Assembly: GCA_002269645.1 (NCBI GenBank)
Contig: NIVC01002442.1
Location: forward strand, 62,001-126,000
Source of the DNA: Macrostomum lignano
Taxonomy: Eukaryota
Reading direction: 5' to 3'
DNA: 64,000 nt
The notes beneath the pieces are model-generated. The model did not search any database and was not told where the DNA came from. It saw only the letters and a list, made by a program, of their open reading frames with translations. Of the stretch, positions 7,546 through 64,000 are shown piece after piece (positions within the stretch are counted from its first letter, which is position 1; each line of letters begins with the position of its first letter). A program made the translations under genes and the position numbers.

Positions 7546-8504
7546 GACATCAGCTCTGTAAGGCATATGCAGCTCAGCAATACAATAAAAACTCCAATAA
7601 AGGGATTTGAAGACTTGTATCTATCAATTGTCAAATTCAATTAATCTGTAAATAAGGAGTTTGAATACTTCTAAAACTTCTTTGTAGGTCAGAGGCTCAG
7701 CAATATAAAATATAAAGTAGAAATGTTTGTATTTAATTTGATTTTGAACTTAATGACTGGTCTTAGCTAGCATCAAGGTTTTAAATATAGAATTTTTAAA
7801 TTTGGATCTAGGGTGTGAATGGCACTGGGATTCTGATGATTATGTGATTCCTGCACACTTGTTTTGGCTAGGTGACCTTGGATCTAGCCAGTTCTAGATA
7901 TAGATAGTTGCTAGTTAATTTGCTAAGGCAACCATTTGTTATTTCTCTTATACTTATTATTTATAACCTTAGTCCCCTAACTAAAAACATAAAAACAAAT
8001 AAGCTGAAATATAAAAAATGAATATCAAAATTAAAAACTTTAGATACAAAACAATTGGTATTATAAAATAAGAAAATAACTAAATTAAAAACTGTTGTTT
8101 GATAAGAAGTTTAGCAAAGAATATAGGATAATTTATCCTAATATTTTTATATACAGGTCCTTGGCTTTGGTCAATTTAAGACATTTATATAATAAACAAG
8201 CTGTTGAAACCCGCGGATTTTGAACCCAGGGAATTCCAATCCCCGGAACTACTTTTGCATGTATTCTGAAATCTAAGGTCATACACAAGCAAAAACTTGT
8301 TAATAGTTAGTAGGATAGAGGTAGACATAAAATGGACACATTCGTGTAAAATTAGAATTTGAAGCAAACATTGATATTGTTGGCTGGGGTACTTCACAGA
8401 ATGTCAGGCAATGTCTGTCTGTCTGACTCTAAAACATGTATTGGCAAACTCTGGCCTCTCTGGACCCTAGGTCCCTTGGATCCTTTAAAATTTCTATCGT
8501 CTCT

Positions 8505-10095
<1,591 letters not shown>

Positions 10096-10789
10096 CCACT
10101 CTCATCTGGCCCGCACATAAGCTGGATTCTTTATCTGGCTTTTGAACTAAAAGTCTGCCGATCCCTGCTTCGAAAGCCAGTTTGTGGGACGTACTACTCT
10201 CATCGTTATTCTCATGCTTTGATCACATCATCTTTCTTGCCAATTTGCAGCCCTGAAAGGAATTTGTGTATCTTCAGCTCCACTGCAGTCTGCATCAGTC
10301 TAACAACCAAGAAAATATGCATTTCTTAGACCATTTAAATTTCAAAGTACTTTTAAGAGAAACTTAAAATTTCCATGGTGTGCCTAATTTAGTAGGGTTG
10401 TATTTCATTGCATTGCATTGCCTTTTCATAAATATTTCGCTTTTACAAACCATTCTGGATTGCCTCGATTTGCCAATTGCCATCCACTGTTAAACTGCTA
10501 CAGAGTTTGCCTATACAGAGAGGAGGGCAGTGGTTAGAATTTCTCACTAAACTGTTATGGCTAAATGTAGCCTCTCCACTCTCGGGGTGCAAGATTGCGA
10601 GAAGGCTATAAATAAAGTTATTCCAAAACACTATACATTTGCTATGTACATTCAGTCCTATCGCCTGACCCTTCATCTGGCTCTGGGGGAATGAGTGAGT
10701 GAGTGGCACAAACAACAGAAAAAGCAGACAAACTTCACATGCTTACAGTTTCTTTTTTGGTTGAGTTACAGAGTTGAAACTTTACATTT

Positions 10790-11335
10790 AGATAGAGAAT
10801 GGGTCAATGAAGAATTGTGTCAAGTTTGAAGTTAATCGCTTTATGTGGAGCAAACTTATGGCAGCTGAAAGTTAGTTAATTTTTAAACCCTTTTACACAT
10901 CTGGGCCCAGATTGGGAAAGAGAGGCAAGCGGGTGGAGGTTGGGGTGGCTGTCTCGCTAAAAAAAGCAGACTAACTTTAAAAGTGCATAGCGCCATTCAG
11001 GATTGACTTTGAGACTCGGAAATTTTACACGATTGTGTCAAAATAGTTGAAGATTGTTCATATCAAATTTGAAGAGGGTCAATAGAAGTGGAGCGGCGCT
11101 ATGGAGGATTTAGTGAAAAAATTGGGCATTTTGAGCAGTTTTTTGCACTCTTAGGTGAGAAGACTCAAATTTAACAAATTTAAAAGTAGCCTAAGACATT
11201 CTCCATAGTAAGTTTAGGGTGGGTGTAAAGTTTGGTGTAATTTGGTTAAGCAGTTTGGGAGTCCATAGCGATCAAAATTGTCCACAGACACACAGACAGA
11301 CACACAGAGTTTTGATTTTTATATGTAGAGATTAC
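10790..11335. mobile_element. Possible non-autonomous Helitron/Helentron-like element
   Basis: Repeated AAGTTTG..AATCG-like motifs, then CACAGACACACAGACAGACACACAG and a TTTTATATGTAGAGAT end, a layout typical of HINE/DINE-like elements. No termini or coding evidence confirmed. Confidence 0.3.
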
Positions 11336-11715
11336 AAAACAGGTAAGTTTAACTTTGAATAAAATATGTATAGCTTTAAATACTTGTAATAAAACCAAAG
11401 AATTAAATAAAAAAAATTCTATTTCTTAACCTTACCCTAAATGCTTTAATAGCCCTTAATATCTATACCTTATCTAAGGCTTAGGTATTATATTTGAAAA
11501 ATTGATAATAAAAACTGTATTAGGATTAATAGAAGTATATAAACAATTTGCCAAAACTGGATAGATGGATATAAATTTGCAAATAAATTTAGATTATGTT
11601 TATTACAACTAACAAACAAAAACTTACAACTAGGTCTAATAGTAATTATAATATATATATATAGTCTAGACTAGTCTTACCAAGTCAAATAAAAAAATCA
11701 TATTTGCTACAACTA

Positions 11716-12543
11716 CGAGGGGTGTCCCAAAAGTTCCCGGAATGTCTAACGTAGCTCTTCAACAGAGCCATGAAATTTCACGCCCATGGTGTCAAATGAA
11801 AGGAAATTTTGTCACAAAGAATACAAAGTTAAAATCATGTTGATATCTTTTTTTATTCAAGAGCTACAGCAAGAAACTTGCGCAAAGGTCAGGGGTAGTG
11901 TTACACAACCTCAACAATCTATGGCAATAATTTTTTCATCTCCATTTTTGGAGTTTTTCATTTTGAATTCGTGCTACTGACGTGTCAGAAAGACATGGTA
12001 GTGTCTATGGAAAAAGGAGAAATGCTCATAAAGCTAATCTGAGCTTTTGCGCGAGTGCAAATAATTTGTACCAAGCGCTTGCTTTCAACTTGAAATTTCT
12101 TTGCGAAAATGAGTTCTCTTCAGAGCCTTGAAAGTCAGCGAAGTCAAGTTTTTGCCCTTTGGTCAGTAGTGATGGAGTGGAGCCAAGATTTCTAACCACT
12201 TATTCTCTATCCACGGTGAGAACAGCCTGAAAAAAACTGCAATTTACGGATGGATCGAACGCTTTAGAGATGGCCAGTCTGCTGTGAATGAATTCAAAAT
12301 GAAAAACTCCAAAAATGGAGATGAAAAAATTATTGCCATAGATTGTTGAGGTTGTGTAACACTACCCTGACCTTTGCGCAAGTTTCTTGCTGTAGCTCTT
12401 GAATAAAAAAAGATATCAACATGATTTTAACTTTGTATTCTTTGTGACAAAATTTCCTTTCATTTGACACCATGGGCGTGAAATTTCATGGCTCTGTTGA
12501 AGAGCTACGTTAGACATTCCGGGAACTTTTGGGACACCCCTCG
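11716..12543 (+). mobile_element. Non-autonomous mariner derivative with ~255-bp TIRs and a transposase N-terminal remnant
   Basis: TA on both flanks (11714-15, 12544-45). Arms 11716-11970 and 12290-12543 are reverse complements with one 1-bp indel and start CGAGGGG. Interior from ATG 12109 encodes a frameshifted mariner HTH (MSSLQSLESQRSQVFALW / GAKISNHLFSIHGENSLKKTAIYGWIERFRDGQSAVNE). Confidence 0.9.
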
Positions 12544-13989
12544 TATAAATAATAGTTTACTAACTTAAGACAATTATTAAACAATAATAATTATTATTGA
12601 TCATTGATTATAATACATGCCCCAATTAGGCCAGATATGTAACTAACAGCTTAGCTAGGCCCCTATAGCTATTAAAAGGCATCTAAAGGATGCATATGGA
12701 TGGATGTTTAGTCCAAGGACTGAGAGGTCACCACCGACCACATAGGAATCAAACACCTGACCTGTAAGTTTTGTGTTTGACACTCAGGTAACCCTTTCAA
12801 TTTTTTTCTGAATTCGCGTCTGAATGACGCACAAGGAGGAAGCTTGTGCTTGTGTGTGTCTACGTCTTCGTATGAACGTCTTTCATATGCAACATGGGCC
12901 TAGAGTCGAGTTCTTAGAAAATTGATTCGCATTCACGATAATTTTAAAGTTTTGTACTGTTTAATCAAAGTATATTTGCAGTAAAAATCGGTGTGAAATT
13001 GTATAACAAAAAGTGCTACTAAGTGTCAGAAAAAAGTTTTTAATTTTAAAAACTACTTAAAAACCATATTTAAATGAGAAAGTTTTGCTTGATATAGGTA
13101 ATTTAACACAAATATTTCGAGGCTTTTTTCAATAAATGGCCTGTGCCATTTGTGCGCTCTACTCATTCATCTATTCTTAAAATTAACTTCAGTATAACAA
13201 ATGGCAATAAATGATAACGTATTTTAGAAAATAATTTTAATTTTACACAATTTTATATTTTAACAACCAACAAGAATGTACTTGCAGGCAGCGTTTCATT
13301 TGTAAACACTAACACAACAGCTGTCAGAGAACAAGTAGGGCGGTCTTGGCCTCGACAGACTGCTAAGTATAAGTAATTTTCGTGAATATTTCACCATATT
13401 ATTTTCTTCTGATCATCGTTGGATTTCTTTCATTACATTATTAGTAAAAAATCAAGAATATACTTTCTGTCTGGGCAGTCTGGCTATACCAATCTGCATG
13501 AGGAGTTTTACAAGTCAAGATCGATTACAAATCACTAGATTTTTATTGATCTGTCGATAGAAATAATTTAGCAGGATTTTTTATTCAGACAGCTTTACGA
13601 ATGGAGGGACAAATTTATTCTGAACACATTATCTAAACCCAAAATAAAAAAATAATGTATGTTTTAAATCATTCAGAAGTTAATTTATTCAGTTGATCAC
13701 ACATGTTTAAATAATTTTTGAGTTCCCTTCTCATTTCCCACTTTATAAGTACATACGATTTCATCTGATGTTTTATGCATGAGCTTTATGCATAAAGTTA
13801 TGCATATATATATATACTATATATACTTATTTACTCATACTTATGAATGAGTATTTCAGTTTGAGTATACTTATGAAATCTTCATCCAACTTAATATGGT
13901 AAATTACAAAAAATGCAATATTGTAATTACACCTGGAAGTAAGTCATCTGCAGAATTGCTTGATTTTATATTAATTTGCATTTCAGTCA

Positions 13990-15715
13990 ATGTCGCACAG
14001 CATAAAAGAGGGACATTTCACGTCCACTATATATGCGTACATAAAGGAGCACCGCTACAAGGAGGCGGTGAACGCCGTCAACCAGCAGCTCACAACGTAC
14101 CCGGACTCGCGGGCCGCGCTGTCGCTGCTGGGCTATTGCTTCTACCAGATGCAGGACTTTGTCTCCGCCAGCGACTCCTACGAGCGGCTCACGCAGCTGT
14201 GCCCCGACTGCGTGGAGTACCAGCTGTACTTTGCCCAGAGCCTCTATCAGGCCGGTCTCTACCAGCAGGCCATGAAGGTGAGCGCCTCATCTTCAATGCA
14301 GCGCAGATGAGTTATAGCTGCTAATTATAGCTGCTGTCAATCAACCGACTCGAATCCCGCAGGTGGCGGCGCAGATCGAGGAGCCGGCCTACCGAAGCCA
14401 GATGCTGAAGCTGGAGGCGGCAATCAAGTACGATGAGGAGGACTTCACCGGCGCCCGCGCGCTGGTGGACCAGTGCCAGGCCGACGACCCGGACAGGCAG
14501 GTGAACCTCGGCTGCCTGCTGTTCAAGGAGGGCAAGTACCAGGAGGCCTGCGCCAAGTTCACCAAAGCTATGCAGGTGAGTAAACAATCACTATCTTTAT
14601 CTACAGGGTTTTAGTAAGCCCCTCACTATCTCCAGAGTTTCAGTAAGCCCTCCCTCACTATCTCCAGAGTTTCAGTAAGCCCTCCCTCACTATCTCCAGA
14701 GTTTCAGTAAGCCCTCCCTCACTATCTCCAGAGTTTCAGTAAGCCCTCCCTCACTATCTCCAGAGTTTCAGTAAGCCCTCCCTCACTATCTCCAGAGTTT
14801 CAGTAAGCCCTCCCTCACTATCTCCAGAGTTTCAGTAAGCCCTCCCTCACTATCTCCAGAGTTTCAGTAAGCCCTCCCTCACTATCTCCAGAGTTTCAGT
14901 AAGCCCTCCCTCACTATCTCCAGAGTTTCATTAAGCTCTCCCTCACTATCTCCAGAGTTTCATTAAGCTCTCCCTCACTATCTCCAGAGTTTCATTAAGC
15001 CCTCCCTCACTATCTCCAGAGTTTCAGTAAGCCCTCCCTCACTATCTCCAGAGTTTCAGTAAGCCAATCTGGTCACCCCACCACCGCCTTTTCCCGCCGC
15101 AGGTGACCAGCTTCCGCCCGGACCTGGCCTACAACATGGCAGTCTGCCATTACCAACTGCGCCAGTACGCCCAGGCCCTGAAGCTCATCGCTGACATCAT
15201 CGAGAGGGGCATCCGCGAGCATCCGGAGCTCGGCGTTGGTATGGCAACCGAAGGCATCGAGGTGCGCAGCGTCGGAAACTCCCTGACGCTGCACGAGACC
15301 GCCCTGGTGGAGGCCTTCAACCTGAAGGCGGCCATCGAGTTCAACCGGCGCAACTTCGCCCAGGCGCAGGACGCCCTCACCGACATGCCTCCGCGCTCTG
15401 AGCAGGAGCTGGACGCCGTCACGCTGCACAACCTGGGCCTCGTTGGCATGGAAACGGACGCTTCAGCTGGTTTCCAGAAGCTGCAGTTCCTCATGCAGCA
15501 GGAGTCCTTCCCGCCTGAGACTCTGGGCAACCTGCTGCTGCTGTACGTCAAGCACGACTTCCACGACCTGGCCGCCGACGTGCTGGCCGAGAGCACCGAG
15601 CAGGCCTTCAAGCTGCTGCCGCCCTACCTGATGGACTTCCTGGAGGCCGTCATTCTGTGCCAAACAGCGCCTGAGGAGGCCTACAGGTGACTGGCATCAA
15701 TCAATCAATCAATCA

Positions 15716-15814
<99 letters not shown>

Positions 15815-15819
15815 AATCA

Positions 15820-15899
<80 letters not shown>

Positions 15900-15957
15900 C
15901 CATCTATCTATCTATCTATCTATCTATCCATCTATCTATCTATCTATCTATCTATCC

Positions 15958-16004
<47 letters not shown>

Positions 16005-18305
16005 CATCTATCTATCCCCAACACTGCCATCTGCAGGCGACTAGAGGAGATGGCCAGCAGACAGACTGAGACACTCCGAAAGCTCACAAAGATGGTGCAG
16101 CAGGCGCGCCAGAAGAAGGAAGACGAGGCTGTGAAGAAGGCGGTTAACGACTACGATGAAGGTTAGCGGATTCTGAGAGAGGAGGAGAGGAGGAGAAAAA
16201 TCACGTAGGAGTCCCGGAGGAGCGCCGGAGAAGTACATTCCCATTCTAATTCCAGCCCTGGAGAAGTACATTTCCATTCTAATTCCAGCCCTGGAGAAGT
16301 ACATTCCCATTCTAATTCCAGCCCTGGAGAAGTACATTCCAATTCTAATTCCAGCCCTGGAGAAGTACATTCCCATTCTAATTCCAGCCCTGGAGAAGTA
16401 CATTCCTATTCTAATTCCAGCCCTGGAGAAGTACATTCCCATTCTAATTCCAGCCCTGGAGAAGTACATTCCCGTTCTAATTCCAGCCCTGGAGAAGTAC
16501 ATTCCCATTCTAATTCCAGCCCTGGAGAAGTACATTCCCATTCTAATTCCAGCCCTGGAGAAGTACATTCCCATTCTAATTCCAGCCCTGGAGAAGTACA
16601 TTCCCATCCTGATGCAGCAAGCCAAGATCTACTGGGATCGCGAAAATTATCCCGAAGTGGAGAAGATCTTCCGCAACTCCGTGGAGTTCTGCAACGATCA
16701 CGACTCCTGGAAGCTGAACGTGGCTCACGTGCTGTTCATGCGGGACAAGTTCAAGGAGAGCATCAGCTTCTACGAGCCCATCGTGAAGAAGCACTACGAT
16801 CACATCCTGAACGTGAGCGCTGTGGTGCTGGCCAACCTGTGCGTGGCCTACATCATGACCAGCCAGAACGAGGATGCGGAGGAGCTCATGAGGAAAATTG
16901 AGAAGGAGGAGGAAGCGGTGAGATTATCTGAGGCTTGTTGGAACTTCTGATTCTGCCTCTCCATCAATGCTTGAATCTGCCTCTCCACTCCATCAGTGCT
17001 TGAATCAGCCTCTCTGCTCCATCGGTGCTTGAATCAGCCTCTCCACTCCATCAGTGCTTGAATCTGCCTCTTCGCTTCATCAGTGCTTGAATCAGCCTCT
17101 CCGCTCCATCAGTGCTTGAATCAGCCTCTCTGCTCCATCGGTGCTTGAATCAGCCTCTCCGCTCCATCAGTGCTTGAATCTGCCTCTTCGCTTCATCAGT
17201 GCTTGAATCAGCCTCTCCGCTTCATCAGTGCTTGAATCAGCCTCTCCACTCCATCAGTGCTTAATTCTGCCTCTCGATCAGTGCTTGATTCAGCCTCTTC
17301 GCTCTCGCTCCATCAGTAATTGAATCTGCCTCTCCAACACCTCAACAGATTGCTTACGAAGACCCGGACAAGAAGATTTTCCACTCGTGCATCGTGAACC
17401 TTGTCATCGGCACCCTGTACTGCTCCAAGGGCAATTATGAGTTCGGCATCAGCCGCATAATCAAAAGCATGGAGCCGTACCAGAAGAAGCTGGGCACGGA
17501 CACCTGGTACTATGCGAAGCGCTGCTTCCTGTCGCTGCTGGAGAACATGGCCAAGCACATGATTCTGATGAAGGACGGCGTTCTGGACGATTGCTTCAAG
17601 TTTCTGGATCTCTGCGAGAGTGAGCTCTGCGAATGGCGTGTTAGAAAACCCGAACCCAACCTGAACCTAACCTGAACCCAGCCCTAACTCAACCGGAACC
17701 CAACCTGAACCCAATCTGAACCCAATCTGAACCCAATCTGAACCCAATCTGAACCCAATCTGAACCCAAACCTGAACCAAACCTGAACTAAACCTGAACC
17801 AAACCTGAACCAAACCTGAACCAAACCTGAACCAAACCTGAACCCAACCTGAACCCAACCTGAACCCAGCCCTAACTCAACCGGAACCCAATATAAACCC
17901 AATCTGAACCCAATCTGAACCCAATCTGAACCCAATCTGAACCCAATCTGAACCCAATCTAAACCCAATCTGAACCCAAACCTGAACCAAACCTGAACTA
18001 AACCTGAACCAAACCTGAACCAAACCTGAACCAAACCTGAACCAAACCTGAACCCAACCTGAACCCAACCTGAACCCAGCCCTAACTCAACCGGAACCCA
18101 ATCTAAACCCAATCTGAACCCAATCTGAACCTAATCTGAACCCAACCCGAACCCAATCCGAACCCAACCCGCAGGATACGGCAACACAGTCAAGGCCTAC
18201 GTGGAGAACCCGCTGGCGCAGAAGGAGCCGCATCCGGGCCGAAATTCGGTCACCTTCGAGGCGCGAATGCTGAAGTCGCTGCTGTTGGACCTCACAGAGA
18301 GTTGA
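13990..18305 (+). CDS. TTC30: Tetratricopeptide repeat protein 30 / IFT70 (fleer), 7 exons, ~647 aa
   Basis: Exons 13990-14277, 14363-14575, 15103-15686, 16037-16161, 16586-16917, 17349-17619, 18175-18305, GT-AG and frame-consistent (1944 nt). Hallmarks [78 protein letters not shown]. The exon 5 acceptor is ambiguous (see findings). Confidence 0.97.
14600..15063. repeat. 32-bp minisatellite (CACTATCTCCAGAGTTTCAGTAAGCCCTCCCT)n, ~14 copies, TTC30 intron 2
   Basis: Direct periodicity. Confidence 0.96.
15696..16016. repeat. (ATCA)n then (TATC)n microsatellite, TTC30 intron 3
   Basis: Direct periodicity. Confidence 0.97.
16227..16607 (+). repeat. 33-bp repeat spanning the TTC30 intron 4/exon 5 junction, ~11.5 copies
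   Basis: Unit CCCTGGAGAAGTACATTCCCATTCTAATTCCAG; terminal AG recurs every 33 nt from 16255 to 16585. Confidence 0.97.
16950..17340. repeat. 29-bp minisatellite (TGCTTGAATCAGCCTCTCCACTCCATCAG)n, TTC30 intron 5
   Basis: Direct periodicity with variant units. Confidence 0.94.
17645..18170. repeat. AACCTG/AATCTGAACCC compound repeat with a 210-bp higher-order duplication, TTC30 intron 6
   Basis: The CCCAGCCCTAACTCAACCGGAACCC marker recurs at ~210-bp spacing (~17676, ~17866-17886, ~18076). Confidence 0.9.
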
Positions 18306-19202
18306 ACTGATTTGCAAAGATTTGCAATATGCTACTGTAAGCAGCCCCAACCGGCTATTTTACTCATTTTACTGCCCTAAGTCAACCCACGCGTCTCATG
18401 CAATCTTTTGATATTCAACTTTTGATTTTAATTTATGCGCAGAAAGTGCAAGCAATTATTTTATTTATTTATGGGTGTCATGTTCACTGTTTAAGCAGAT
18501 TTCAATTATATTTATTTGATTAAATTGTTGTTGTGAGTCGATGTTTAGCTTCTCCTTTATAGTCTTCTATGTGGCACTCAGACTGGTGGAAGTCAGTGAG
18601 GCTGGACTAGGACTTATGCCGAAAGTACTTTGTAACCTTCAAAGACTCACTGATGCAGCGTCATCGCACAGGGTGCACACAGGCCCTGACGTATTGACGA
18701 CTAAACATCGGTCCAAATTCGTTTTGACAATTTCTGCATGTACTTTCACACCAGCTGCGAGTTGCCACATCTTGTATGCCTAAGCACAATCGTAGTTCGA
18801 ACTATCTTTTTAGCACTTCTTGTAGGGCCAAGAAGAAGGCCCAGATGTCACTGATTAGAAGCTGTTAGCTGACAACATACAGGTTGTTTCAACCGTCCTT
18901 GCTGCGTATTATCTCTTCTTCTGTGGTTGAATTTCACTCCTTTACAATTCCTGTACAATCGTTTCCTGTAATTTCAGGTGTTCACTAGCTTATACCAGCT
19001 TATATTGTGCATATCCGGCTGATGCAAGCGCATCGCCAAACATTTATGCTAAAAACAGTTTTCTATGCAATACTTAAAGAACTATTCTGAAGTGAAAACA
19101 GATTTTTTGAATTAATAAATACTGTCTTGTGGCTCCTAATTAATCTGCAGTTTTCAAAACAATTGTGCCCTGAGTCAACCTGAATTGAAATCTGAAGCAG
19201 TC

Positions 19203-19361
19203 GCACAGCCCTTAGCCAAACAAATGGAGTGCACTGGAGGATAGACAGGTGCGCACAGCACTTAGCCAAACAAATGGAGTGCACTGGAGGATAGACAGGT
19301 GCGCACAGCCCTTAGCCAAACAAATGGAGTGCACTGGAGGATAGACAGGTGCGCACAGCCC
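19203..19361. repeat. 50-bp tandem repeat, 3 copies
   Basis: CTTAGCCAAACAAATGGAGTGCACTGGAGGATAGACAGGTGCGCACAGC at 19211, 19261 and 19311 (start). Confidence 0.92.
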
Positions 19362-19723
19362 AGAGCGCTGGAGCTCACTAGAAAACTCTGCATGCTTCCC
19401 TTGACGAGTTTAAAGTGCTTTGAGAAGTGTTGTGACGTTTGGAAGACTTTTCCTGACTCGTATCAAAGTTAAAAATAAAGGCTGAAACCTTAAAACATGC
19501 AAACAAAGTTGCAAGAATTTGGATACTTAAGCCAGAAAGTTCTACTTTCTGAGTTAAATATAGCCAGTCTCAATAGCAAAATATATTGTAGTCTTACAGC
19601 GTATTTCACAGATCGAAGTCCCAGTTGATTGCATAGAGGTTAATCGCGCAGAGGTACAAATTGAAAGGTATTGTGCTACAAGTTAATGTTCGAAATCAAT
19701 GTCAAGAACAATCAATCTCAACT

Positions 19724-20878
19724 CTATTTCGAACCGCAGTTGAAGACCAGAACTTCAAAAGAGTCCAGAGCTCGCTCCTCTCCGCCATACGGTACGTAGG
19801 CCCTGTTGTGGCCTAAGACGGCCTTGCCGGTGCACACTTCTCCGTTACACTGCAAGAGAAAAGTGCAACTTTATATCAGATATATTGTAGCCATTGTGTA
19901 GCGGCTTTGCCTGTGCGATACAATTTAACTGACTGGAAATGTTGCAAATTGTGTAACCAGCAAGGACAATTTTAAAACGTTAGTTTCTAGTGGTCCTTGT
20001 AAATCAGAATGCGGAATTTCGTGTTTTTAAACCAGGTGTCACAATTTCAGTCAGATGTCACAGTTTCAGTCAGGTGTCACTGTTTCAGTCAGATGCCACA
20101 GTTTCAGTCAGATGTCACAGTTTCAGTCAGATATCACAGTTTCTGTCAGATGCTGCAGTTTTAGTCAGATGTCACAGTTTCAGTCAGATGCTGATGCTAC
20201 ACACACACACACACACACACCATTTTACAGCTGGGTGAACCGAAGCAATGCAGAGTTAAGTGTGTCTTACTCCATGACACAAATTGTTCCCAAAGCGTCG
20301 AGAATCGAACCCCGGACCTCTGAGTCTGGTTTCTCCCTCAGTTCGACCCTCTAGGCTACAACCCCTCGCAGAAGTACATGTATATAGTACTTTGGCACCC
20401 TCAGGACACTGACGCCCCCTCAATGACGCGCCCCTCCCGATGCATATCCTGGCTCCGCCCCTGAATAAGCCCATAATTGCATGATTAATTTAGCGTGCAA
20501 TAAACCACAGCTGCTTACCTTGCCCCTGACCACGAACAGCGGGCTGCCTCTGTCGCTCCCTGCTACCAGCGCCCGCTGGGGCAGGACTCCGTCTCTGACG
20601 GGTGCCCAGGTAAAACCAATGCCAAATCGATCAGTGCAAGAGTGCACCAGGACCTGATAGCTCTGCACCGGCAGCTCTCTGCCGCCGAACGAGATGTACG
20701 CACAGGCCTGGCCCCTGACCAGCTTGCCGGGCACCCATTCTCCTTTGTGCTCAGCTCTGATCACGTAGCACTCGCCTCCCGCATCCGCAGCGTTGTCTGG
20801 AATTTCGCTGCCCGAAGCTGGTCGCCAGCTAAGGCAGAGCTCTACGCCAACGGTGGTTCCGAAGGTCACGTCGCTCAT
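19724..20878 (-). CDS. DM9-repeat protein (flatworm DM9-1 / natterin-like DM9 lectin domain), 2 exons, 161 aa
   Basis: Exon 20519-20878 (MSDVTFGTTVGVELCLSWRPASGSEIPDNAADAG...GEWVPGKLV...AYISFGGRELPVQSYQVLV...) joins in phase 0 to exon 19724-19849 (CNGEVCTGKAVLGHNRAYVPYGGEERALDSFEVLVFNCGSK*). Two DM9 repeats (W..A..G.iP..A..aG...Y.ar...G...pGK.......Y..yGG.E.....yEVL). Confidence 0.88.
20033..20220. repeat. 19-bp minisatellite (TCAGATGTCACAGTTTCAG)n followed by (CA)n, DM9 intron
   Basis: Direct periodicity. Confidence 0.9.
20200..20361 (-). mobile_element. tRNA-derived SINE with a CORE-like central domain and microsatellite tail
   Basis: Minus strand: A box TAGCCTAGAGGG (20347-58), B box GGTTCGATTC (20302-11), then GAGTAAGACACACTTAACTC...CCCAGCTGTAAAATGG resembling CORE (GGGCAAGTCACTTAAC...CTGTAAAATGG), ending in (TG)n. 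Confidence 0.55.
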
Positions 20879-21399
20879 GGCTGAACTTAATCGGGTTCGT
20901 TCGTTAGTCACAGCTGTCGCAACGAAAGTAGTGTTGGAGGGCAGTTTGTGCAAGGCCGAAGGCTTTATATAATGTTGGCGTGGCCAAATTTAGACCTTCG
21001 TAATTGTGAAATTTGTTTACAAGTAAAACTTGTATTTGTAAGGCTATCTGATCACTTAAAATATGCCATTTTGCATAATTTTGCTTGCTGTCACCAAAAC
21101 GCTCAACATGGACCCAATGTTGAAACCCACTCTCGTACAGCGCGCAATACGTAACCGGAAAATATGATGTAAGAATGACGTCTTTTACTTCAAGAAATGA
21201 CTTATTCTACTAATATTTTGTCAAGAAATGTTTCTGTAACAGGAATACCTGGCCAGGGGCGTCATCACCGGGGGGGGGGGGCATGTCCCCCCAGTAAAAG
21301 CAATGCGGGAAAATACCAATGCTTTGTCCCCCACCCCTTCTAGTTGTCCTGTAATGGAAATCAATAATTTTGCTTCAGGGCAACAAAACATAGCGCCTG

Positions 21400-21710
21400 C
21401 ATCACCAAAATGAGTGCCTCTGGCGCTAAAATGGTGACTTTGGCGCTAAAATGGTGCATGCGGCGCCAAAATGGTACCTATGGCGCTAAAATGGTGCCTT
21501 TGGCGCTAAAATGATGCCATTGGCGCTAAAATAGTGCGTGAAGCGCTAAAATGGTGCCTGCGGCGCTAAAATGGTGCCTGCGGCGCTAAAATGGTGCCTG
21601 TGGCATTAAAATGGTGCATGCGGCGCTAAAATGGTGCCTTTGGCGCTAAAATGATGCCATTGGCGCTAAAATAGTGCGTGAAGCGCTAAAATGGTGCCTG
21701 CGGCGCCAAA
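21400..21710. repeat. 20-bp minisatellite (TGGCGCTAAAATGGTGCCTT)n with a 140-bp higher-order repeat
   Basis: Direct periodicity; variant block 21481-21560 recurs at 21621-21700. Confidence 0.93.
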
Positions 21711-21799
21711 TGATCAATGACAACACATGTAGAATTCTCGGCTTTGTCCTCCCACCATAAAATCCATAGCGATACCCCTGTACCTGGCTATTCCAGAAA

Positions 21800-22140
21800 A
21801 TCGAGGAGGTGCACCGCAAGTCGTGTCTCGCTCCGTTTGGCGTGTTCCACCGGGTCACTGAAGACATCACAGTCGGTGGAGTTCGTCTGAAGGCTGACAG
21901 CATCTGCGCCTTCAACGTGTACTCGATCCACCACGACCCCGAGCTGCTCCCGGAGCCGCAGCGCTTCCTGCCCGAGCGGCATCTGAAGGACGGACAGTTC
22001 GCGCCGTGTCCCCACCTGGCCACCTTCCCGAGCTGTTCATCTTCTTCACGGCTCTGATGCAGCTGTATACAGCATACAGCAGGACGCTGTGGCACCTGAC
22101 GGAGGATCCGGAGTTCTCGAAAGGAACGCTCTTGAGGGCT
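21800..22140 (+). pseudogene. 3' fragment duplicate of the downstream P450, lacking the heme-binding motif
   Basis: 21800-22027 equals 23941-24168 with 2 mismatches. The 45 nt encoding GLGKRACLGESLARM are replaced by CC (frameshift). A second rearranged patch follows. Confidence 0.92.
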
Positions 22141-22869
22141 TAAAGAAACACCTGGACAAAATCTCGTTATCTCGCTGGTTGTTAAACTTTTTCATTCTTG
22201 GAGTCTGCCTTCGTAGAGTAGAGTCTGCTTCATCTGACACGCGAGAGTGATTCCACTTTTTATGTACTTTTAACATATTATATTTTTAATTTTAATTTCA
22301 CTCCATGTGACATGAGGCGCAGTTTTTGCCTCCAAAGTCAATTTTAAGAATTGTTTCTACAAGGAACTTATAAAACTCTGTTTTGTTAAATTTTTAGATC
22401 ATTTTGGCAAGCATTAGCGCCAATAACGAGCAAATTGCTATTGTTAAAGTGACATGCAAGGTCAGTTAAAGTGTCTTCAAACTGCTTGGCGAGCAACGCA
22501 ATTCGTCCCCGCATCTCAGAGTGGTTTTTGAATACGCAACAGCCTGTCCTTCTGGGGCACAAAAAATGACACGATACTTATTTTAGCACCGACCAGTTGA
22601 GCTCGAATGAAAAACCTCACTACTATAAACCAATAGAGAAGAGCTGGGTGAGCAGTACCAGTGCTGCGTAACTGTGCAGACTGGCGACGACCTTCATTTG
22701 AGACTGCGGGTCTGTAACACCATGCGAAACCATCTCGGCTAGTTTGGCAAGCAAATAACTTTTAAAAGACACTTTTCTTAGCCAGAGAGCACACTGAGCA
22801 GCAAGCCCTGCATCTGTAACTGCAACAGAGATTCAAAGCTTCCAAATAAAAACACAGGCGTTCTTCTAC

Positions 22870-24378
22870 ATGGCTACAGCTACAGTAGCTCTCGCTGGAG
22901 GCGCAGTGGCGCTCGGCCTCTACTGGCTCAAGCGAAAGCTCGACGACGCTCGAGAGCCGCCGTCGGTCGGTCGCTATCCTCTGGTTGGCAGCTACTTCCA
23001 CTTGGACGAGCCGCTCTACCTGTCGATGTACGAGAAGTTCGGCACAGAGCCGATCGTTCGAGTTCACTTCGGCACCCAGTGCGTGTTCTTTTTCAACCGG
23101 TGGCCCGTCTTCAAGGAGGCAATGATTGACAACGCTGAGCAGCTGACTGGCCGGCTGCCTCAGTACCTGCTGATGCACCTTCTCGGTGACAAGGGCGGCA
23201 TAGTGCTAACAGATGGAGAAATCTGCCGGGAGTACCGAAGGTTTACATTAAAGACGCTCCGCGACTTCGGATTCGGGCGCCATGGAGCTGAGGAGATCAT
23301 CGCGATCGAGGCGGAGCACATGGTGAGCACGCTGGATGCGGCGGCTGGAGAGCCAGTGGAGACGCTGGTGGTCATGAGCACCGCCACCAGCAACGTGATC
23401 TGCCAGCTTGTGTTCGGCTCACGACTCGCCTCCGAGGATGAGCGATTTAGCGAGATGCTCAACCTATTTAGAAACCTAACCCAGAACTCGAGTTCCAATT
23501 TTAATCGCTACACTTTCATGTCAGTGATGCCGCTAGTTAAAAATATTCCGCCACTAATGGAACTGCTTTTGAAAGTCCCAAGCTCAAAGAGGGTCGTTGA
23601 GAATTTCGAAAAGCTAAGAATGTACTGTACAGAGCAGCAAGAGCGCCATATGAAAGAGATGGACAGTGTGGATCAGGCCAGGGACTACATTGAGGCCCAC
23701 CTGCTGCACCAGAGAAAACACCCCGAGCTCTTCAACGATAAACGGCTCACACTCGCGGTCAGCGACTTGTTCGTGGCTGGAACGGACACCACCGCCAACT
23801 CGCTCCGGTGGGCCATTCTCTACATGATTGGAAACCCCGACATGGCCGAGAAGGCGCACAAGGAGATCGTCGATGTGATCGGTCGAGACCGACTGCCCAA
23901 GATGCAGGACAAGCCGAGTCTGCACTACACCCAGGCCGTCATCGAGGAGGTGCACCGCAAGTCGTGTCTCGCTCCGTTTGGCGTGTTCCACCGGGTCACT
24001 GAAGACATCACAGTCGGTGGAGTTCGTCTGAAGGCTGACAGCATCTGCGCCTTCAACGTGTACTCGATCCACCACGACCCCGAGCTGTTCCCGGAGCCGC
24101 AGCGCTTCCTGCCCGAGCGGCATCTGAAGGATGGACAGTTCGCGCCGTGTCCCCACCTGGCCACCTTCGGTCTGGGCAAGAGAGCTTGTCTGGGAGAGAG
24201 TCTGGCCAGGATGGAGCTGTTCATCTTCTTCACGGCTCTGATGCAGCGGTACCGCTTCGGTCTGGACCCCGAGGACAGTAGGACGCTGTGGCACCTGACG
24301 GAGGATCCTGAGTTCTCGAAGGGAACGCTATTGAGAGCTCCACCGCTACATAAGATTGTTTTCACACAACGCGCTTAA
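22870..24378 (+). CDS. Cytochrome P450, CYP2 clan, intronless, 502 aa
   Basis: N-terminal anchor, proline hinge PPSVGRYPLVG, I-helix AGTDTT, ExxR (EVHR), PERH, heme motif FGLGKRACLGESLA. Confidence 0.96.
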   Translation: MATATVALAGGAVALGLYWLKRKLDDAREPPSVGRYPLVGSYFHLDEPLYLSMYEKFGTEPIVRVHFGTQCVFFFNRWPVFKEAMIDNAEQLTGRLPQYLLMHLLGDKGGIVLTDGEICREYRRFTLKTLRDFGFGRHGAEEIIAIEAEHMVSTLDAAAGEPVETLVVMSTATSNVICQLVFGSRLASEDERFSEMLNLFRNLTQNSSSNFNRYTFMSVMPLVKNIPPLMELLLKVPSSKRVVENFEKLRMYCTEQQERHMKEMDSVDQARDYIEAHLLHQRKHPELFNDKRLTLAVSDLFVAGTDTTANSLRWAILYMIGNPDMAEKAHKEIVDVIGRDRLPKMQDKPSLHYTQAVIEEVHRKSCLAPFGVFHRVTEDITVGGVRLKADSICAFNVYSIHHDPELFPEPQRFLPERHLKDGQFAPCPHLATFGLGKRACLGESLARMELFIFFTALMQRYRFGLDPEDSRTLWHLTEDPEFSKGTLLRAPPLHKIVFTQRA

Positions 24379-25638: not shown

Positions 25639-26760
25639 ATGTCTGGATCACAACAGCAGGAGCAGCCTCAGGAGCAGCCTCAGGAGCAGTCTCAGGAGCA
25701 GCCTCAGGAGCAGCCTCAGGAGCAGCCTCAGGAGCAGCCTCAGGAGCAGCCTCAGGAGCAGCCTCAGGAGCAGCCTCAGGAGCAGCCTCAGGAGCAGCCT
25801 CAGGAGCAGCCTCAGGAGCAGCCTCAGGAGCAGCCTCAGGAGCAGCCTCAGGAGCAGCCTCAGGAGCAGCCTCAGGAGCAGCCTCAGGAGCAGCCTCAGG
25901 AGCAGCCGCAGGAGCAGCCTCAGGAGCAGCCTCAGGAGCAGCCGCAGGAGCAGCCTCAGGAGCAGCCTCAGGAGCAGCCTCAGGAGCAGCCTCAGGAGCA
26001 GCCTCAGGAGCAGCCTCAGGAGCAGCCTCAGGAGCAGCCTCAGGAGCAGCCTCAGGAGCAGCCTCAGGAGCAGCCTCAGGAGCAGCCTCAGGAGCAGCCT
26101 CAGGAGCAGCCTCAGGAGCAGCCTCAGGAGCAGCCTCAGGAGCAGCCTCAGTCAGGGGAGCCAACCGACTACGACGTGCTGGTGATTGGAGCGGGCATCA
26201 GCGGCCTGGCAGCCGCCAACGAGCTGCTGCGCCTCCGGCCCGACTGTCGGGTGGCTGTAGTGGAAGCCAAGGACCGGGTCGGCGGCCGAACCCTCGGTCA
26301 CCGGATGCGCACGGCGGGCGGCGGCGAGGCCAACTTCGACCTCGGCGGCATGTGGATCGGGCCCAGCCAGCGGCATATTTCTGAGCTGATGCGCCAGCTG
26401 CACATTGAGCAGTACCCGCAGTACCTGACTGGCCGGAAGTGCGCCGAGATGGGCGCCAAGGTGGCGCAGTACACCGGCGAGATCCCCTACATTGGGCTGG
26501 TGGGTCTGCTGGACATGGGCAAGGTGCTCGTCCAGATGGAGCGCCGAGTCCGCCAGGTAGATGCGGCCGATCCAGGAGCCTGCCGCACCGCCGCCCAGCT
26601 CGACGGCCTGACGGGCCAGGCGCTTTTCAACAGCCTGTCGTGGAGCCGCGCCACGAAGTGTCTGGTGCAGGCTGCCGCCCGCACCATCTGGGGTGCCGAC
26701 TTGAGCCGCATGTCCGCTCTCTACATGCTGGCGTACGCCAGTGCCGCAGGTGGATTCCAG
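25639..26760 (+). CDS. Flavin-containing amine oxidase (MAO-like), first exon only, with a (QEQP)41 N-terminal repeat
   Basis: FAD motif DVLVIGAGISGLAAA, EAKDRVGGRT and DLGGMWIGP.Q; donor GTAAAT at 26761. No downstream amine-oxidase exon was recognised in the window. Confidence 0.85.
25657..26148 (+). repeat. 12-bp in-frame repeat (CAGGAGCAGCCT)x41
   Basis: 492 nt, nearly invariant. Confidence 0.98.
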
Positions 26761-36124: not shown

Positions 36125-39100
36125 ATGCCAAAGAATTCCAAACAAGTTGCGTATTTACATAACCCCACTGTTGGAAATTATCACTATGGTAAGTAGGAAG
36201 TTAAAACTATTCCTAAAAAGGCAATGTGTTTATATGAAGGCCTTTATATCTAAAGTGGCACATCTAGGGGGGGTAGCCATTAGGGATTAGATGATATTAT
36301 ATTTTTAGGATTTTCAAGACTCAAGACCTTTGCTTTTGAGATAATCAAGATTAAGCCTAATTAGCATTTAGTAGGCCTATTTACACATTTTTTGTTAGTG
36401 CTAATATTATTATTTGTTAAATATGTATAATGATATAGAAAGAAAACCAATATTATAAAATAATGAGTTTGTTAGTAAGTTGATATAGGGATTAACTGAG
36501 CATGATTTTTTTCATGCATGATTGGAACTCAACTGTGACTATGCATGACCGTGAATTTTTTATAGCATACATTTTAATTTAAACACAATAATTAATATTA
36601 ATACTACCAAGTTTAATAATTTTTATTGATTTTTTAAGTTTTGTTTTATAATGTTTATAGTTTGACTATCTTTTATTATGTGGCTTTGTTATTATCTAAA
36701 CTGATTTGTTGCAGTCTCTTAGCTCTTAGCTTTGGCCTATTTTAATAAGAAGCATAAGGCAAAATTAAAAAATTCTTTTTTAAAGAAAGTATAAAGTCCA
36801 TTTTGATAAAAAAAAAATTTTGATTTTACATTTTAGGTCCTAAGCAAATTGGCTATTCATCATTATAATTTTTTAATAATATTACATATTTTATATTTAT
36901 AACAATATCAGGTATAATAAAATAAATAGCAAAACCATTTTGTATAACTTCTGGAGAAGTAAAAAAATTATGCTATTAATTATTATGCTTAGAATGATTA
37001 GGCCCTACTAGTGTACCAAAAATTTCTAATTTTCTAGCATACCAATTGACAGTTTAGCCATTTGGGCATTCCAATTTGGTATACCATTTAAATTTTAAGT
37101 TTGAGATAAATTTTTGGCTCTTAATTACAAAAAATGTTAATTATAAATTTATATTTTTGAGCTGTAATTTTGTTTTATTTAAAATGAGAATAATTTGAAA
37201 TATTTTTAAAAAGATATTCTTTATAAGAAGGTTTTCTTAAAAAAATCTTTTCATTTGATGTATTTTTACAAAATTTATTGCTTCTAGCATACTATATACT
37301 GCATTATCTTGACTATGGATTTATTGGAAATTAAAGTACTTTTGGCTTTTTATATATTTATTACTAATTTGTATTAACTCACAGGCCCAGGCCATCCAAT
37401 GAAGCCTCACAGACTCAGCCTGACCCACAGCCTCATTGTGAATTATGGCCTCATCGATGCCATGGATGTAAGCTGGCTTCCTGTTCATTGTCGTGTTTTT
37501 TTATGTTTAATGTTTTATGTATCATGTGTAATGGTAAAGCTGCACTCCCATATGCACTCATTTTAGTACTTTATTCCATATCGCGCCACATCTCACGACA
37601 TGGCCCTGTTCCACACCGAGGATTATGTGCACTTCCTGGAGAGCGTCTCGCCCCAGACCATCGGCAGCGTTGCCAAGGAGGTCACCAGCATGTTCAATGT
37701 CGGCGACGACTGGTTAGTGACTTCTTCGTGCTCGGCTGCTGCATCCCTCCTGCTGGGATGTCCCCAGCCCTCCTGGGATGTCCCCAGCCCTCCTGGGATG
37801 TCCCCAGCCCTCCTGCTGTGGTGTCCGCATCTCCCGCTGGGGTGTGTCCGCATCCCTCCCGCTGGGGTGTCCGCATCCCTCCTGCTGTGGTGTCCGCATC
37901 CCTCCCGCTGGAGTGTCCGCATCCCTCCTGCTGTGGTGTCCGCATCCCTCCTGCTGTGGTGTCCGCATCTCCCGCTGGGGTGTGTCCGCATCTCTCCTGC
38001 TGTGGTGTCCGCATCCCTCCTGCTGTGGTGTCCGCATCTCCCGCTGGGGTGTGTCCGCATCCCTCCCGCTGGGGTGTCCGCATCCCTCTTGCTGGGGTGT
38101 CCGCGTCCCTCCCCCATGTACAGAAGCCCCCTGACCGCCACCCGCAGCCCGGTATTTGACGGCATCTTCGACTTCTGCTCGGCGTACACCGGCGCCTCCA
38201 TTCAGGGAGCGCAGCTGATCAACAACAATGTGAGCTTGCGGGTTACAGGTGCTTTGTAAACATCCGGTCATCACTGCTAGCACTACAGAGTTTAATAGTT
38301 GTCCTTGAGTTTGAACGCCAGCTGTCTGAATTGAGTGCCAGCTGTCTGAATTGAGTGCCAGCTGTCTGAATTGAGTGCCCGCTGTCTGAATTGAATGCCA
38401 GCTGTCTGAATTGAGTGCCAGCTGTCTGAATTGAGTGCCAGCTGTCTGAATTGAATGCCAGCTGTCTGAACTGAATGCCAGCTGTCTGAACTGAATGCCA
38501 GCTGTCTGAACTGAATGCCAGCTGTCTGAACTGAATGCCAGCTGTCTGAACTGAATGCCAGCTGTCTGAACTGAATGCCAGCTGTCTGAACTGAATGCCA
38601 GCTGTCTGAACTGAATGCCAGCTGTCTGAATTGAATGCCAGCTGTCTGAATTGAGTGCCAGCTGTCTGAACTGAATGCCAGCTGTCTGAACTGAATGCCA
38701 GCTGTCTGAATTGAATGCCAGCTGTCTGAACTGAATGCCAGCTGTCTGAACTGAATGCCAGCTGTCTGAACTGAATGCCAGCTGTCTGAACTGAATGCCA
38801 GCTGTCTGAACTGAATGCCAGCTGTCTGAATTGAATTGAGATCTTCGCCCCCCCCCACACCGCAGCAATGCGAGATCGCCATCAACTGGTCCGGCGGCCT
38901 TCACCACGCCAAGAAGTACGAGGCCTCCGGCTTCTGCTACATCAACGACATCGTGCTGGGAATCCTGGAGCTGTTAAAGCACCACGCTCGGGTGCTGTAC
39001 ATCGACATCGACATTCACCACGGCGACGGCGTGCAGGAGGCCTTCTACCTGACCGACCGCGTGATGACGGTGTCCTTCCACAAGTACGGCAACCTCTTCT

Positions 39101-39750
39101 TCCCGGGCACCGGCGACATGTACGAGATCGGCGCGGACGCCGGCCGGCTGTACAGCGTCAACGTGCCGCTGAAGGAGGGCATCGACGATGAGCTGTACGC
39201 CTCGATCTTCAAGCCGGTGGTGCGCGACGTGTTCGACTTCTACCAGCCCTCCGTGGTGGTGCTGCAGTGCGGCGCCGACTCGCTCGGCTGCGACCGGCTC
39301 GGCGTCTTCAATTTGAGCATCTGTGGCCACGGCGAGTGCGTCCGGTTTGTCAAGAGCTTCGGCGTGCCGACCCTCGTGCTGGGCGGCGGCGGCTACACGG
39401 TGCGCAACGTGGCCCGCTGCTGGACCTACGAGACCGCCTGCCTGCTGGGCCGCGAGGACGACATGGCGCCCGACCTGCCCTTCTCCGAGTACATCGACTT
39501 CTTCTCGCCGGACTTCGTGCTGCACCCGGACCTGAGCACCAAGCAGGAGAACATGAACACCAAGACCTACTTGGACTCCATCCGGGTGGTGGTGCACGAC
39601 AACCTCAAGCAGCTCAGCCACGCGCCCTCCGTCCAGCTGCAGGACGTGCCGCCCGACTTTTTTCCTCAGCTGGACGATGACCAGCGCGCCGAGATGGAGG
39701 AGCGGGAGGACGCCCGGATGTCCGGCTCTGACCAGGATATGTACGACTAG
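36125..39750 (+). CDS. HDAC3: Histone deacetylase 3, 5 exons, 419 aa
   Basis: Exons 36125-36188, 37385-37467, 37567-37712, 38148-38229, 38866-39750, frame-consistent (1260 nt). [42 protein letters not shown], and HDAC3-type [45 protein letters not shown]. Confidence 0.97.
37745..38105. repeat. GC-rich ~19-22-bp compound minisatellite, HDAC3 intron 3
   Basis: Recurring CTCCTGCTGTGGTGTCCGCATC / CCCGCTGGGGTGT units. Confidence 0.9.
38318..38835. repeat. 20-bp minisatellite (GCTGTCTGAACTGAATGCCA)n, ~26 copies, HDAC3 intron 4
   Basis: Direct periodicity. Confidence 0.97.
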
Positions 39751-62900: not shown

Positions 62901-64000
62901 GTCAGATTAGCAATCCATTCTATCCTATCATCTCAGAAGGGTCAGATTAGCAATCCATTCTACCATATCATCCCAGAAGGGCCAGATTAGCAATCCATTC
63001 TATCCTATCATCCCAGAAGGGTCAGATTAGCAATCCATCCCATCTTTTCCCTTCAAAAGTGTCAGATTAGCAATCCATTCTATCCTATCATCCCAGAAGG
63101 GTCAGAATAGCAATCCATTCTATCCTATCATCTCAGAAGGGTCAGATTAGCAATCCATCCCATCTTTTCCCTTCAAAAGTGTCAGATTAGCAATCCATTC
63201 TATCCTATCATCTCAGAAGGGTCAGATTAGCAATCCATTCTATCCTATCATCCCAGAAGGGTCAGATTAGCAATCCATTCCATCTTTTCCTTTCAAAAGT
63301 GTCAGATTAGCAATCCATTCTATCCTATCATCCCAGAAGGGTCAGATTAGCAATCCATTCTATCCTATCATCTCAGAAGGGTCAGATTAGCAATCCATTC
63401 CATCTTTTCCCTTCAAAAGTGTCAGATTAGCAATCCATTCTATCCTATCATCTCAGAAGGGTCAGATTAGCAATCCATTCTATCCTATCACCCCAGAAGG
63501 GTCAGAATAGCAATCCATTCCCCCAGAAGGGTCAGATTAGCAATCCATTCCATCTTTTCCCTTCAAAAGTGTCAGATTAGCAATCCATTCTATCCTATCA
63601 TCTCAGAAGGGTCAGAATAGCAATCCATTCTATCCTATCATCCCAGAAGGGTCAGATTAGCAATCCATTCTATCCTATCATCCCAGAAGGGTCAGATTAG
63701 CAATCCATCCCATCTTTTCCCTTCAAAAGTGTCAGATTAGCAATCCATTCTATCCTATCATCCCAAAAGGGTCAGATCAGCAATCCATCCCATCTTTTCC
63801 CTTCAAAAGTGTCAGATTAGCAATCCATTCCATCTTTTCCCTTCAAAAGTGTCAGATTAGCAATCCATTCTATTCTATCATCCCAGAAGGGTCAGAATAG
63901 CAATCCATTCTATTCTATCATCCCAGAAGGGACAGATTAGCAATCCATTCCATCTTTTCCTTTCAAAAGTGTCAGACTAGCAATCCATTCTATCCTATCA
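56936..64000. repeat. 40-bp satellite, >175 units, two monomer types, higher-order repeats; runs off the window end
   Basis: Type A GAAGGGTCAGATTAGCAATCCATTCTATCCTATCATCCCA; type B AAAGTGTCAGATTAGCAATCCATTCCATCTTTTCCCTTCA. Confidence 0.98.

Follow-up and report, generated by a model that had tools for sequence, protein, structure and literature searches.

The stretch of DNA analysed here (the window) comprises 64,000 nucleotides (nt) of the flatworm Macrostomum lignano (assembly GCA_002269645.1, contig NIVC01002442.1, positions 62,001 to 126,000 of the forward strand) and carries, at 13990..18305 on the plus strand, the coding region of IFT70/TTC30 (Mlig000704g1). The feature of interest is a tandem array of 33-nt units in the fourth intron of this gene, in which every unit is a copy of the 3' splice junction of that intron. 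The gene model, built by hand, consists of seven coding exons (13990-14277, 14363-14575, 15103-15686, 16037-16161, 16586-16917, 17349-17619 and 18175-18305, all on the plus strand), with every intron of the GT-AG type, and yields a protein of 647 amino acids (aa) that is 100% identical to the M. lignano protein PAA57823.1 (BOX15_Mlig000704g1). Compared by sequence, positions 7987-24305 of the window match contig NIVC01002442.1 without a difference. The identity to metazoan TTC30A/IFT70A proteins is 65-72%, the solved Chlamydomonas IFT70 chains 8bd7_C and 4uzy_A match residues 5-645 at E ~ 3.5e-240, and the AlphaFold model is all-helical, with a mean predicted local distance difference test score (pLDDT) of 81; the protein belongs to the IFT70/TTC30 family. 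In M. lignano, the gene has two groups of paralogs, with 83% and 68% identity to the copy in the window, and both contain an intron after E403, in the same position and phase as intron 4. A protein search for an orthologue in a sister species returned no match between 83% and 100% identity.

Exon 4 (16037..16161, plus strand) ends in ...GATGAAG in phase 1, its final G opening the Ala404 codon, and exon 5 (16586..16917, plus strand) encodes residues in the middle of helix 391-421. The intervening intron 4 (16162..16585, plus strand; 424 nt, GT at 16162-16163) starts with a unique, purine-rich leader (16162..16222, plus strand; gttagcggattctgagagaggaggag...ggagcgcc), after which eleven in-register 33-nt units, each ending in CCAG, fill positions 16223..16585 on the plus strand. 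Tandem Repeats Finder (TRF) delimits the array at 16227-16607, with a period of 33 nt, 11.5 copies, 97% matches, 0% indels and a score of 734; together with the start of exon 5, the in-register array spans 16223-16607. Read across the junction, the unit is TCTAATTCCAG, the 11-nt tail of the intron, followed by CCCTGGAGAAGTACATTCCCAT, the initial 22 nt of exon 5, so that each AG-ending unit is an exon-5-derived 22-mer plus the tail. The genuine exon start (16586..16607, plus strand) is the template of the exon part of the unit and the final half-copy of the TRF array.

A branch-like CTAAT sits inside the intron tail of every unit, and the acceptor AGs end at 16255, 16288, 16321, 16354, 16387, 16420, 16453, 16486, 16519, 16552 and 16585. 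From -11 to +22, the eleven acceptors are identical, and the 29-nt unit pattern has 11 matches in the window against 0 expected from 100 shuffles. The first unit from the 5' side (16223-16255) has a degenerate 5' edge, with CGCCGG where the others have CCCTGG, and single substitutions mark four of the units in the window (16273 C>T, 16341 C>A, 16407 C>T and 16474 A>G). A twelfth in-register AG, at 16221-16222, closes the leader, in purine-rich surroundings that make a poor acceptor context. Splicing at the first AG (16255) would give an in-frame product of 757 aa with 10 extra 11-aa modules and without a stop. This anatomy had been read correctly in the original prediction, made from the window alone: TRF and the gene model bear out the gene, the exon and intron numbering, the donor, the eleven AGs, the in-frame 33-nt unit and its composition as the junction plus 22 nt of exon 5.

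The assembly carries three near-identical copies of the gene, g1 in the window, g3 on a contig here denoted L002 and g2 on L003, as fits the extra large chromosomes of the DV1 line and redundancy of the assembly. Six database proteins represent this gene, namely, three from GenBank, one per locus, and three listed in UniProt and attributed to M. lignano. All six have the canonical junction of exons 4 and 5, with a single ALEKYIP, and only the 3'-most AG (16584..16585, plus strand) yields this junction sequence, which identifies it as the functional acceptor; the ten AGs upstream (16254..16552, plus strand) are used in no annotated protein. Whether the array has 10, 11 or 41 units, the GenBank model of the locus gives one and the same canonical 647-aa protein. 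These models derive from RNA sequencing (RNA-seq) reads processed with StringTie/TACO and from a de novo transcriptome mapped to the genome (PMC5730564), and, as far as such models go, the dominant isoform appears to be the canonical one, made by use of the last AG. The original prediction had named exclusive use of 16585 as the outcome that would speak against it, and in the gene models at the three loci this is essentially what is found. A query with a repeat-bearing junction (exon 4, four units and exon 5), run against 5.8 billion proteins, detected no ILIPALEKY-type repeat and returned only canonical IFT70 fragments of other taxa. This negative carries little weight, as M. lignano proteins derived from RNA-seq appear to be missing from the collection, in which the protein cluster of the gene comprises NCBI and UniRef entries only. 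Masking of the internal acceptors by RNA structure was considered and rejected: the predicted fold of 16130-16660 is no more stable than those of shuffled sequences (z = +0.63). An Rfam scan of 13000-19000 produced no match.

Between the three gene copies, the 1944 sites of the coding sequence show only 6-8 differences, most of them synonymous (~99.6-99.7% identity), and the leader and the exon context of the array are identical. Intron 4 itself is 424 nt long in the window, 1439 nt in L002 and 391 nt in L003, with 11, 41 and 10 AG-ending units, respectively (11.5, 42.5 and 10.5 copies by TRF). Variant units that are absent from the window occur in L002 and L003: GAAGTACATT is replaced by GAATCACATT or GAATCAAATT, and the intron tail by TCTAACTCCAG; one AG has been lost to CCAT in a unit of L002 only, and each of the three contigs has its own pattern of variant units. 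With head-to-tail 33-nt units, within the ~10-100 bp by which the class is recognised, that differ in number between the gene copies and are interspersed with variants, the array is a minisatellite or variable number tandem repeat (VNTR).

The units show none of the constraint expected of coding sequence. In the IFT70 frame, two of the nine types of internal-unit variants are synonymous and seven are non-synonymous (K>N, Y>H, H>Q, P>S, I>V, I>T, and an A>S that destroys an AG as well), whereas the real coding sequence has ten variable sites, eight of them synonymous and two non-synonymous (Fisher's exact p = 0.023). There is thus no sign of purifying selection on the peptide that the units would encode. 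A period divisible by three and an open frame, which the array does have, are weakly informative with regard to coding: there are no stops in the IFT70 frame across the 11, 42 and 10 units of the window, L002 and L003, but the open frame over 42 units in L002 follows from the copying of a single open unit, 5 of 20 arrays in the window have a period divisible by three, the array can be read without a stop in two of the three plus-strand frames and in one minus-strand frame, and indels are also lacking in the 32-mer and 11-mer arrays of this gene, which are clearly non-coding. Thus, the frame neutrality of the array is incidental and hardly meaningful.

The point where translated units would enter the protein is the middle of helix 391-421, which is modelled with a local pLDDT of ~85-90. 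Nearby residues L405, Y408, P410, L412, M413, Q415 and A416 are invariant among 35 metazoan IFT70s, and the alignment with Chlamydomonas IFT70 shows no gap there. Insertion of 11 to ~450 extra, proline-containing residues here would probably be disruptive.

Taken together, these observations make it likely that the array in intron 4 of IFT70/TTC30 is a hypervariable intronic minisatellite that is selectively neutral. We propose that, before the divergence of the three gene copies in the DV1 line, a 33-bp segment over the intron-4/exon-5 junction (11 nt of intron and 22 nt of exon) was tandemly duplicated, via slippage during replication or via unequal exchange. The subsequent expansion and contraction, to 10, 11 and 41 AG-bearing units and presumably by the same processes, and the gain of variant units are apparent from the comparison of the copies. 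In the mature mRNA, as represented by the RNA-seq-based gene models, donor 16161 is joined to exon 5 at 16586 and the upstream copies leave as part of the intron, presumably having acted as decoy acceptors. Given that the copies are identical from -11 to +22, the choice of the acceptor would have to rest on sequence more than 22 nt downstream; candidates for what lets the last copy win are the genuine exon sequence, including exonic enhancers, and proximity to the donor at 16918, that is, exon definition. The CTAAT located 7 nt from its own AG is probably too close to serve that AG, and the branch point of the real acceptor is likely the CTAAT of the preceding unit, ~40 nt upstream, in which case the array itself now supplies the branch point and the pyrimidine tract. 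The array probably plays no role in the protein. The original prediction had also raised a shift of a splice site by tandem duplication, caught in the act; the duplication of the junction is supported, whereas the acceptor in use is not shifted relative to the protein, and intron 4 is merely lengthened by taking in exon-derived copies.

One alternative is that several of the identical AGs are used to an appreciable extent, so that IFT70 is produced as an in-frame ladder of proteins with 0 to n extra 11-aa modules, over a range set by the copy number of the allele, and this could represent either splicing noise or functional tuning. Several considerations lend it weight and count against exclusive use of the last AG. 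The evidence for such use is indirect, coming from gene models rather than from RNA reads; the GenBank set was filtered of transcripts overlapping repeat annotations (PMC5730564), and a read joining exon 4 to an internal unit would align equally well at 10 or more positions in each of the three loci, so that these models would systematically miss minor isoforms. The local sequence offers no reason for the last of eleven identical acceptors to win, and there is no RNA structure to mask the internal ones. Every choice of acceptor is in frame and stop-free, so that nonsense-mediated decay would not remove the products. The contrast between synonymous and non-synonymous variants is based on only 9 and 10 variant types. 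Nor is victory of the last copy a general rule: in a pathogenic tandem duplication of BRCA1 intron 9 and part of exon 10, the cDNA kept the whole duplicated piece, including the intron part, which implies use of the upstream acceptor and results in a frameshift (PMC11839443). The BRCA1 duplication resembles the M. lignano array in taking in the acceptor and the start of the exon and differs in its outcome, which in the flatworm is use of the last acceptor and an unaltered protein. We nevertheless consider multiple acceptor use unlikely: an extra unit is found in no annotated or database protein, the units vary without coding constraint and one has lost its AG, their number drifts from 10 to 41 between gene copies with nearly identical exons, the insertion would break a confidently modelled helix of invariant residues, and the gene models likewise pass over the decoy acceptors supplied by the intron 2 and intron 5 arrays. 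The tunable acceptor array suggested in the original prediction is thus not favoured by the evidence, and its second suggestion, a coding VNTR within a conserved TPR protein, fares worse still. A constitutively translated repeat would account for the period divisible by three and for the frame that stays open over 10-42 units, but the repeat is absent from all six protein models, no insertion occurs at this point in metazoan orthologues or in Chlamydomonas IFT70, each unit has a consensus acceptor located 3' of a GT donor, retention of the intron would lead to an immediate stop (GGT TAG), the units are free of coding constraint, and the insertion site lies in a helix of invariant residues; we regard such a VNTR as extremely improbable.

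The remaining rivals of a neutral intronic minisatellite concern its origin and its reality. The whole unit could be exon-derived, that is, a 33-nt duplication could have occurred within the coding exon, with the ancestral acceptor AG at 16222, and the copies would have been intronised once CCTGATGCAG mutated to TCTAATTCCAG, in a true 3'-ward shift of the splice site. The array opens with an exon-like half unit (CGCCGGAGAAGTACATTCCCAT) directly after the in-register AG at 16222, so that the exon-like parts exceed the intron tails by one, and there is a weak similarity between the tail and CCTGATGCAG, to which the original prediction had drawn attention as a resemblance of the 11-nt tail to the continuation of the exon. 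This similarity is not significant, given that shuffles equal it in 8% of cases and unrelated acceptor 11-mers in 3 of 7; the purine-rich sequence 5' of 16222 is unlike any real acceptor of the gene or its paralogs, and the degenerate 5' edge could equally result from decay or from boundary microhomology (CCGGAG vs CTGGAG). An origin entirely within the exon seems unlikely. That the array, or its copy number, was created by mis-assembly of long reads is barely credible. PacBio data underlie the assembly, the genome is highly repetitive and in part redundant, and the exact copy numbers of arrays can be wrong, but the same array is present in the same register in three separate contigs that are told apart by single-nucleotide polymorphisms and a ~3-kb indel, and the patterns of variant units differ from contig to contig.

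Competition between tandem identical 3' splice sites was reportedly demonstrated by Reed and Maniatis in 1986, in engineered two-copy constructs and mammalian extracts, the choice being made by flanking exon sequence and proximity; compared to those constructs, the array in IFT70 is a natural flatworm one, has 10-41 copies and duplicates just 22 nt of the exon. A literature search for natural multi-copy duplicated acceptors retrieved no description of an array of this kind, and one on Macrostomum minisatellites found nothing specific. The closest known counterpart is the class of variable tandem repeats at exon-intron boundaries described by De Grassi and Ciccarelli for recently duplicated human genes (2009, PMC2812944), in which a tandem repeat extends over the boundary, varies in copy number between near-identical paralogs and is spliced out as an intron; likewise, the M. 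lignano array reaches 22 nt into exon 5 and varies between the gene copies. The human boundary repeats are mostly novel introns that arose from exon sequence via cryptic sites, and 66% of them have repeat-retaining transcripts (PMC2812944), whereas here a pre-existing, paralog-shared intron was lengthened, the genuine acceptor lies inside the unit, and no repeat-retaining transcript is on record among the annotated proteins. NAGNAG and other tandem acceptors (PMC1449888, PMC4484395) similarly present several in-frame acceptors in a row, with small in-frame indels as the outcome, but are spaced by 3-18 nt, compared to 33 nt with a separate pyrimidine tract for each site here, beyond the 18-nt limit of the class; furthermore, that class is defined by the use of more than one site, whereas only the canonical junction is seen in the six protein models. 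Intron gain under the Rogers model, as in the potato RdRp gene (PMC4974935), shares with our case the alteration of an intron by a duplicated splice-site segment, with the mRNA unchanged. Intron gain by tandem duplication does not apply to intron 4 itself, given that both paralog groups have this intron at the E403 position and phase, and that its length alone changes. Human spl-TRs (PMC10078293) and the CeRep25B minisatellite of C. elegans (PMC4039745) are intronic minisatellites adjoining splice sites that could, in principle, influence splicing, but those repeats are regulatory sequence rather than copies of a splice junction, and no effect on splicing is demonstrated here.

The array is probably without effect on the protein or the animal. 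Its interest is that of a natural experiment in acceptor competition, in which 10-41 acceptors within one intron are alike in their branch-like motif, pyrimidine tract, AG and first 22 exon bases. Because wrong choices are in frame and escape nonsense-mediated decay, leakage to upstream AGs would be open to direct counting in RNA-seq data: the canonical junction of exons 4 and 5 has the diagnostic k-mer ACGATGAAGCCCTGGAGAAGTACATTCCCATCCTGATG, and exon 4 joined at any upstream AG would have ACGATGAAGCCCTGGAGAAGTACATT[CT]CCATTCTAAT, with ...CCCATTCTAATTCCAGCCC... next to exon 4 in such a transcript. If use of the last copy proves strict, the choice of acceptor among these sites would, in this flatworm, depend entirely on sequence that lies beyond the first 22 nt of the exon. 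If, as we think improbable, the upstream copies are used, each IFT70 allele would produce a copy-number-dependent ladder of in-frame isoforms with 11-aa modules in a conserved TPR helix. Transgenesis works in M. lignano (PMC5730564), and transgenic animals could be employed to ask what defines an acceptor where introns routinely hold decoy-rich minisatellites. The case also illustrates a way for an intron to lengthen, through the uptake of copies of the adjacent exon, with the mRNA unchanged.

In L002 (8985-10423; the corresponding stretch of L003 is 8731-9121), the unit directly 5' of the true exon is the variant GAATCAAATT. Variant units can thus reach the position adjacent to the exon, and conversion of such a variant into the exon's 22 nt would alter the conserved K407 and Y408, which makes the array a potential mutational hazard for exon 5.

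The array in intron 4 is set in a markedly repeat-rich environment. TRF reports 66 rows in the window, with ~26% of the bases in arrays of period 11 or longer, and simple and tandem repeats account for 15% of the genome (PMC5730564). Arrays make up most of five of the six introns of the gene and, apart from the 33-mer, are a 32-mer in intron 2 (14598..15065), (ATCT)n that fills intron 3 (15696..16016), a 29-mer in intron 5 (16959..17304) and an 11-mer in intron 6 (17647..18169) that stops 5 nt short of the acceptor, all on the plus strand. The 32-mer array contains 14 decoy YAGs and the 29-mer array 10 strong-looking ones, in both cases with a pyrimidine content at least equal to that of the true acceptor. 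Copy number changes between the gene copies in all five arrays: in the window, L002 and L003, respectively, TRF counts 14.7, 14.7 and 16.8 copies of the 32-mer, 80.8, 286.8 and 204.8 of (ATCT)n, 12.1, 20.1 and 10.1 of the 29-mer, and 47.4, 44.5 and 51.5 of the 11-mer, in addition to the 33-mer counts given above. The equivalents of intron 4 in the two paralog groups are filled by different, unrelated arrays, a 30-mer and a 35-mer. Such saturation of the genome with intronic minisatellites makes intron 4 much less exceptional; decoy-acceptor arrays are routine, and what is special about this one is only that its unit copies the real junction with 22 nt of the exon.

A second stack of decoy acceptors beside a real one lies at 38312-38870, where a 20-mer array (TGAATGCCAGCTGTCTGAAC, 26 copies, one GCCAG per unit) ends ~30 nt 5' of the acceptor of a histone deacetylase exon (open reading frame (ORF) 38836-39750, Hist_deacetyl, 2.4e-66). 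A 19-nt core, TTGARTCWGCCTCTCCRCT, is common to the 29-mer of intron 5 in the window (16959-17304) and the 35-mer of the 68%-identical paralog (L006, 6524-6922); the presence of related minisatellites in different introns of old paralogs suggests a dispersed, possibly mobile or seeded, repeat family.

Two short database ORFs from other animals, P0133 and P0137, read through an intron between ALER and YIP (...ALER, intron, YIPVLM...), three residues further into the protein than intron 4, so that the position of the intron near the conserved helix varies between lineages. Intron 3 (15687-16036) consists almost wholly of (ATCT)n, and the exons of both paralog groups are uninterrupted at this site, so that intron 3 may be lineage-specific. 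A Rogers-type duplication signature was looked for at its boundaries and is not supported: the boundaries match at 11 of 20 positions, compared to 9 and 10 of 20 at introns 1 and 2, a similarity no better than in those introns that is attributable to the splice consensus.

Elsewhere in the window, at 25639-26220 on the plus strand, a 12-nt array (CAGGAGCAGCCT, 41 copies, 25657-26151) directly follows an ATG at 25639, the frame of which reads MSGSQQ(QEQP)n and continues into DYDVLVIGAGISGLAAA, the FAD-binding Rossmann motif of an ORF that resembles amine oxidases (Pfam Amino_oxidase, 3.5e-16); a genuine coding VNTR at the N-terminus of this protein is plausible. At 21770-22054 and 22870-24378 on the plus strand lie an apparently intronless cytochrome P450 ORF of 502 aa (Pfam p450, 4.8e-90) and, 5' of it, a short fragment in which the C-terminal part of the ORF recurs (EEVHRKSCLAPFGVFHRVT...), which suggests partial tandem duplication of the P450 gene. 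Finally, a 40-nt minisatellite of ~178 copies with 85% matches occupies more than 7 kb at 56938-64000, reaching the end of the window, and contains embedded 30-nt sub-repeats every ~670-2500 nt, suggestive of a higher-order structure.

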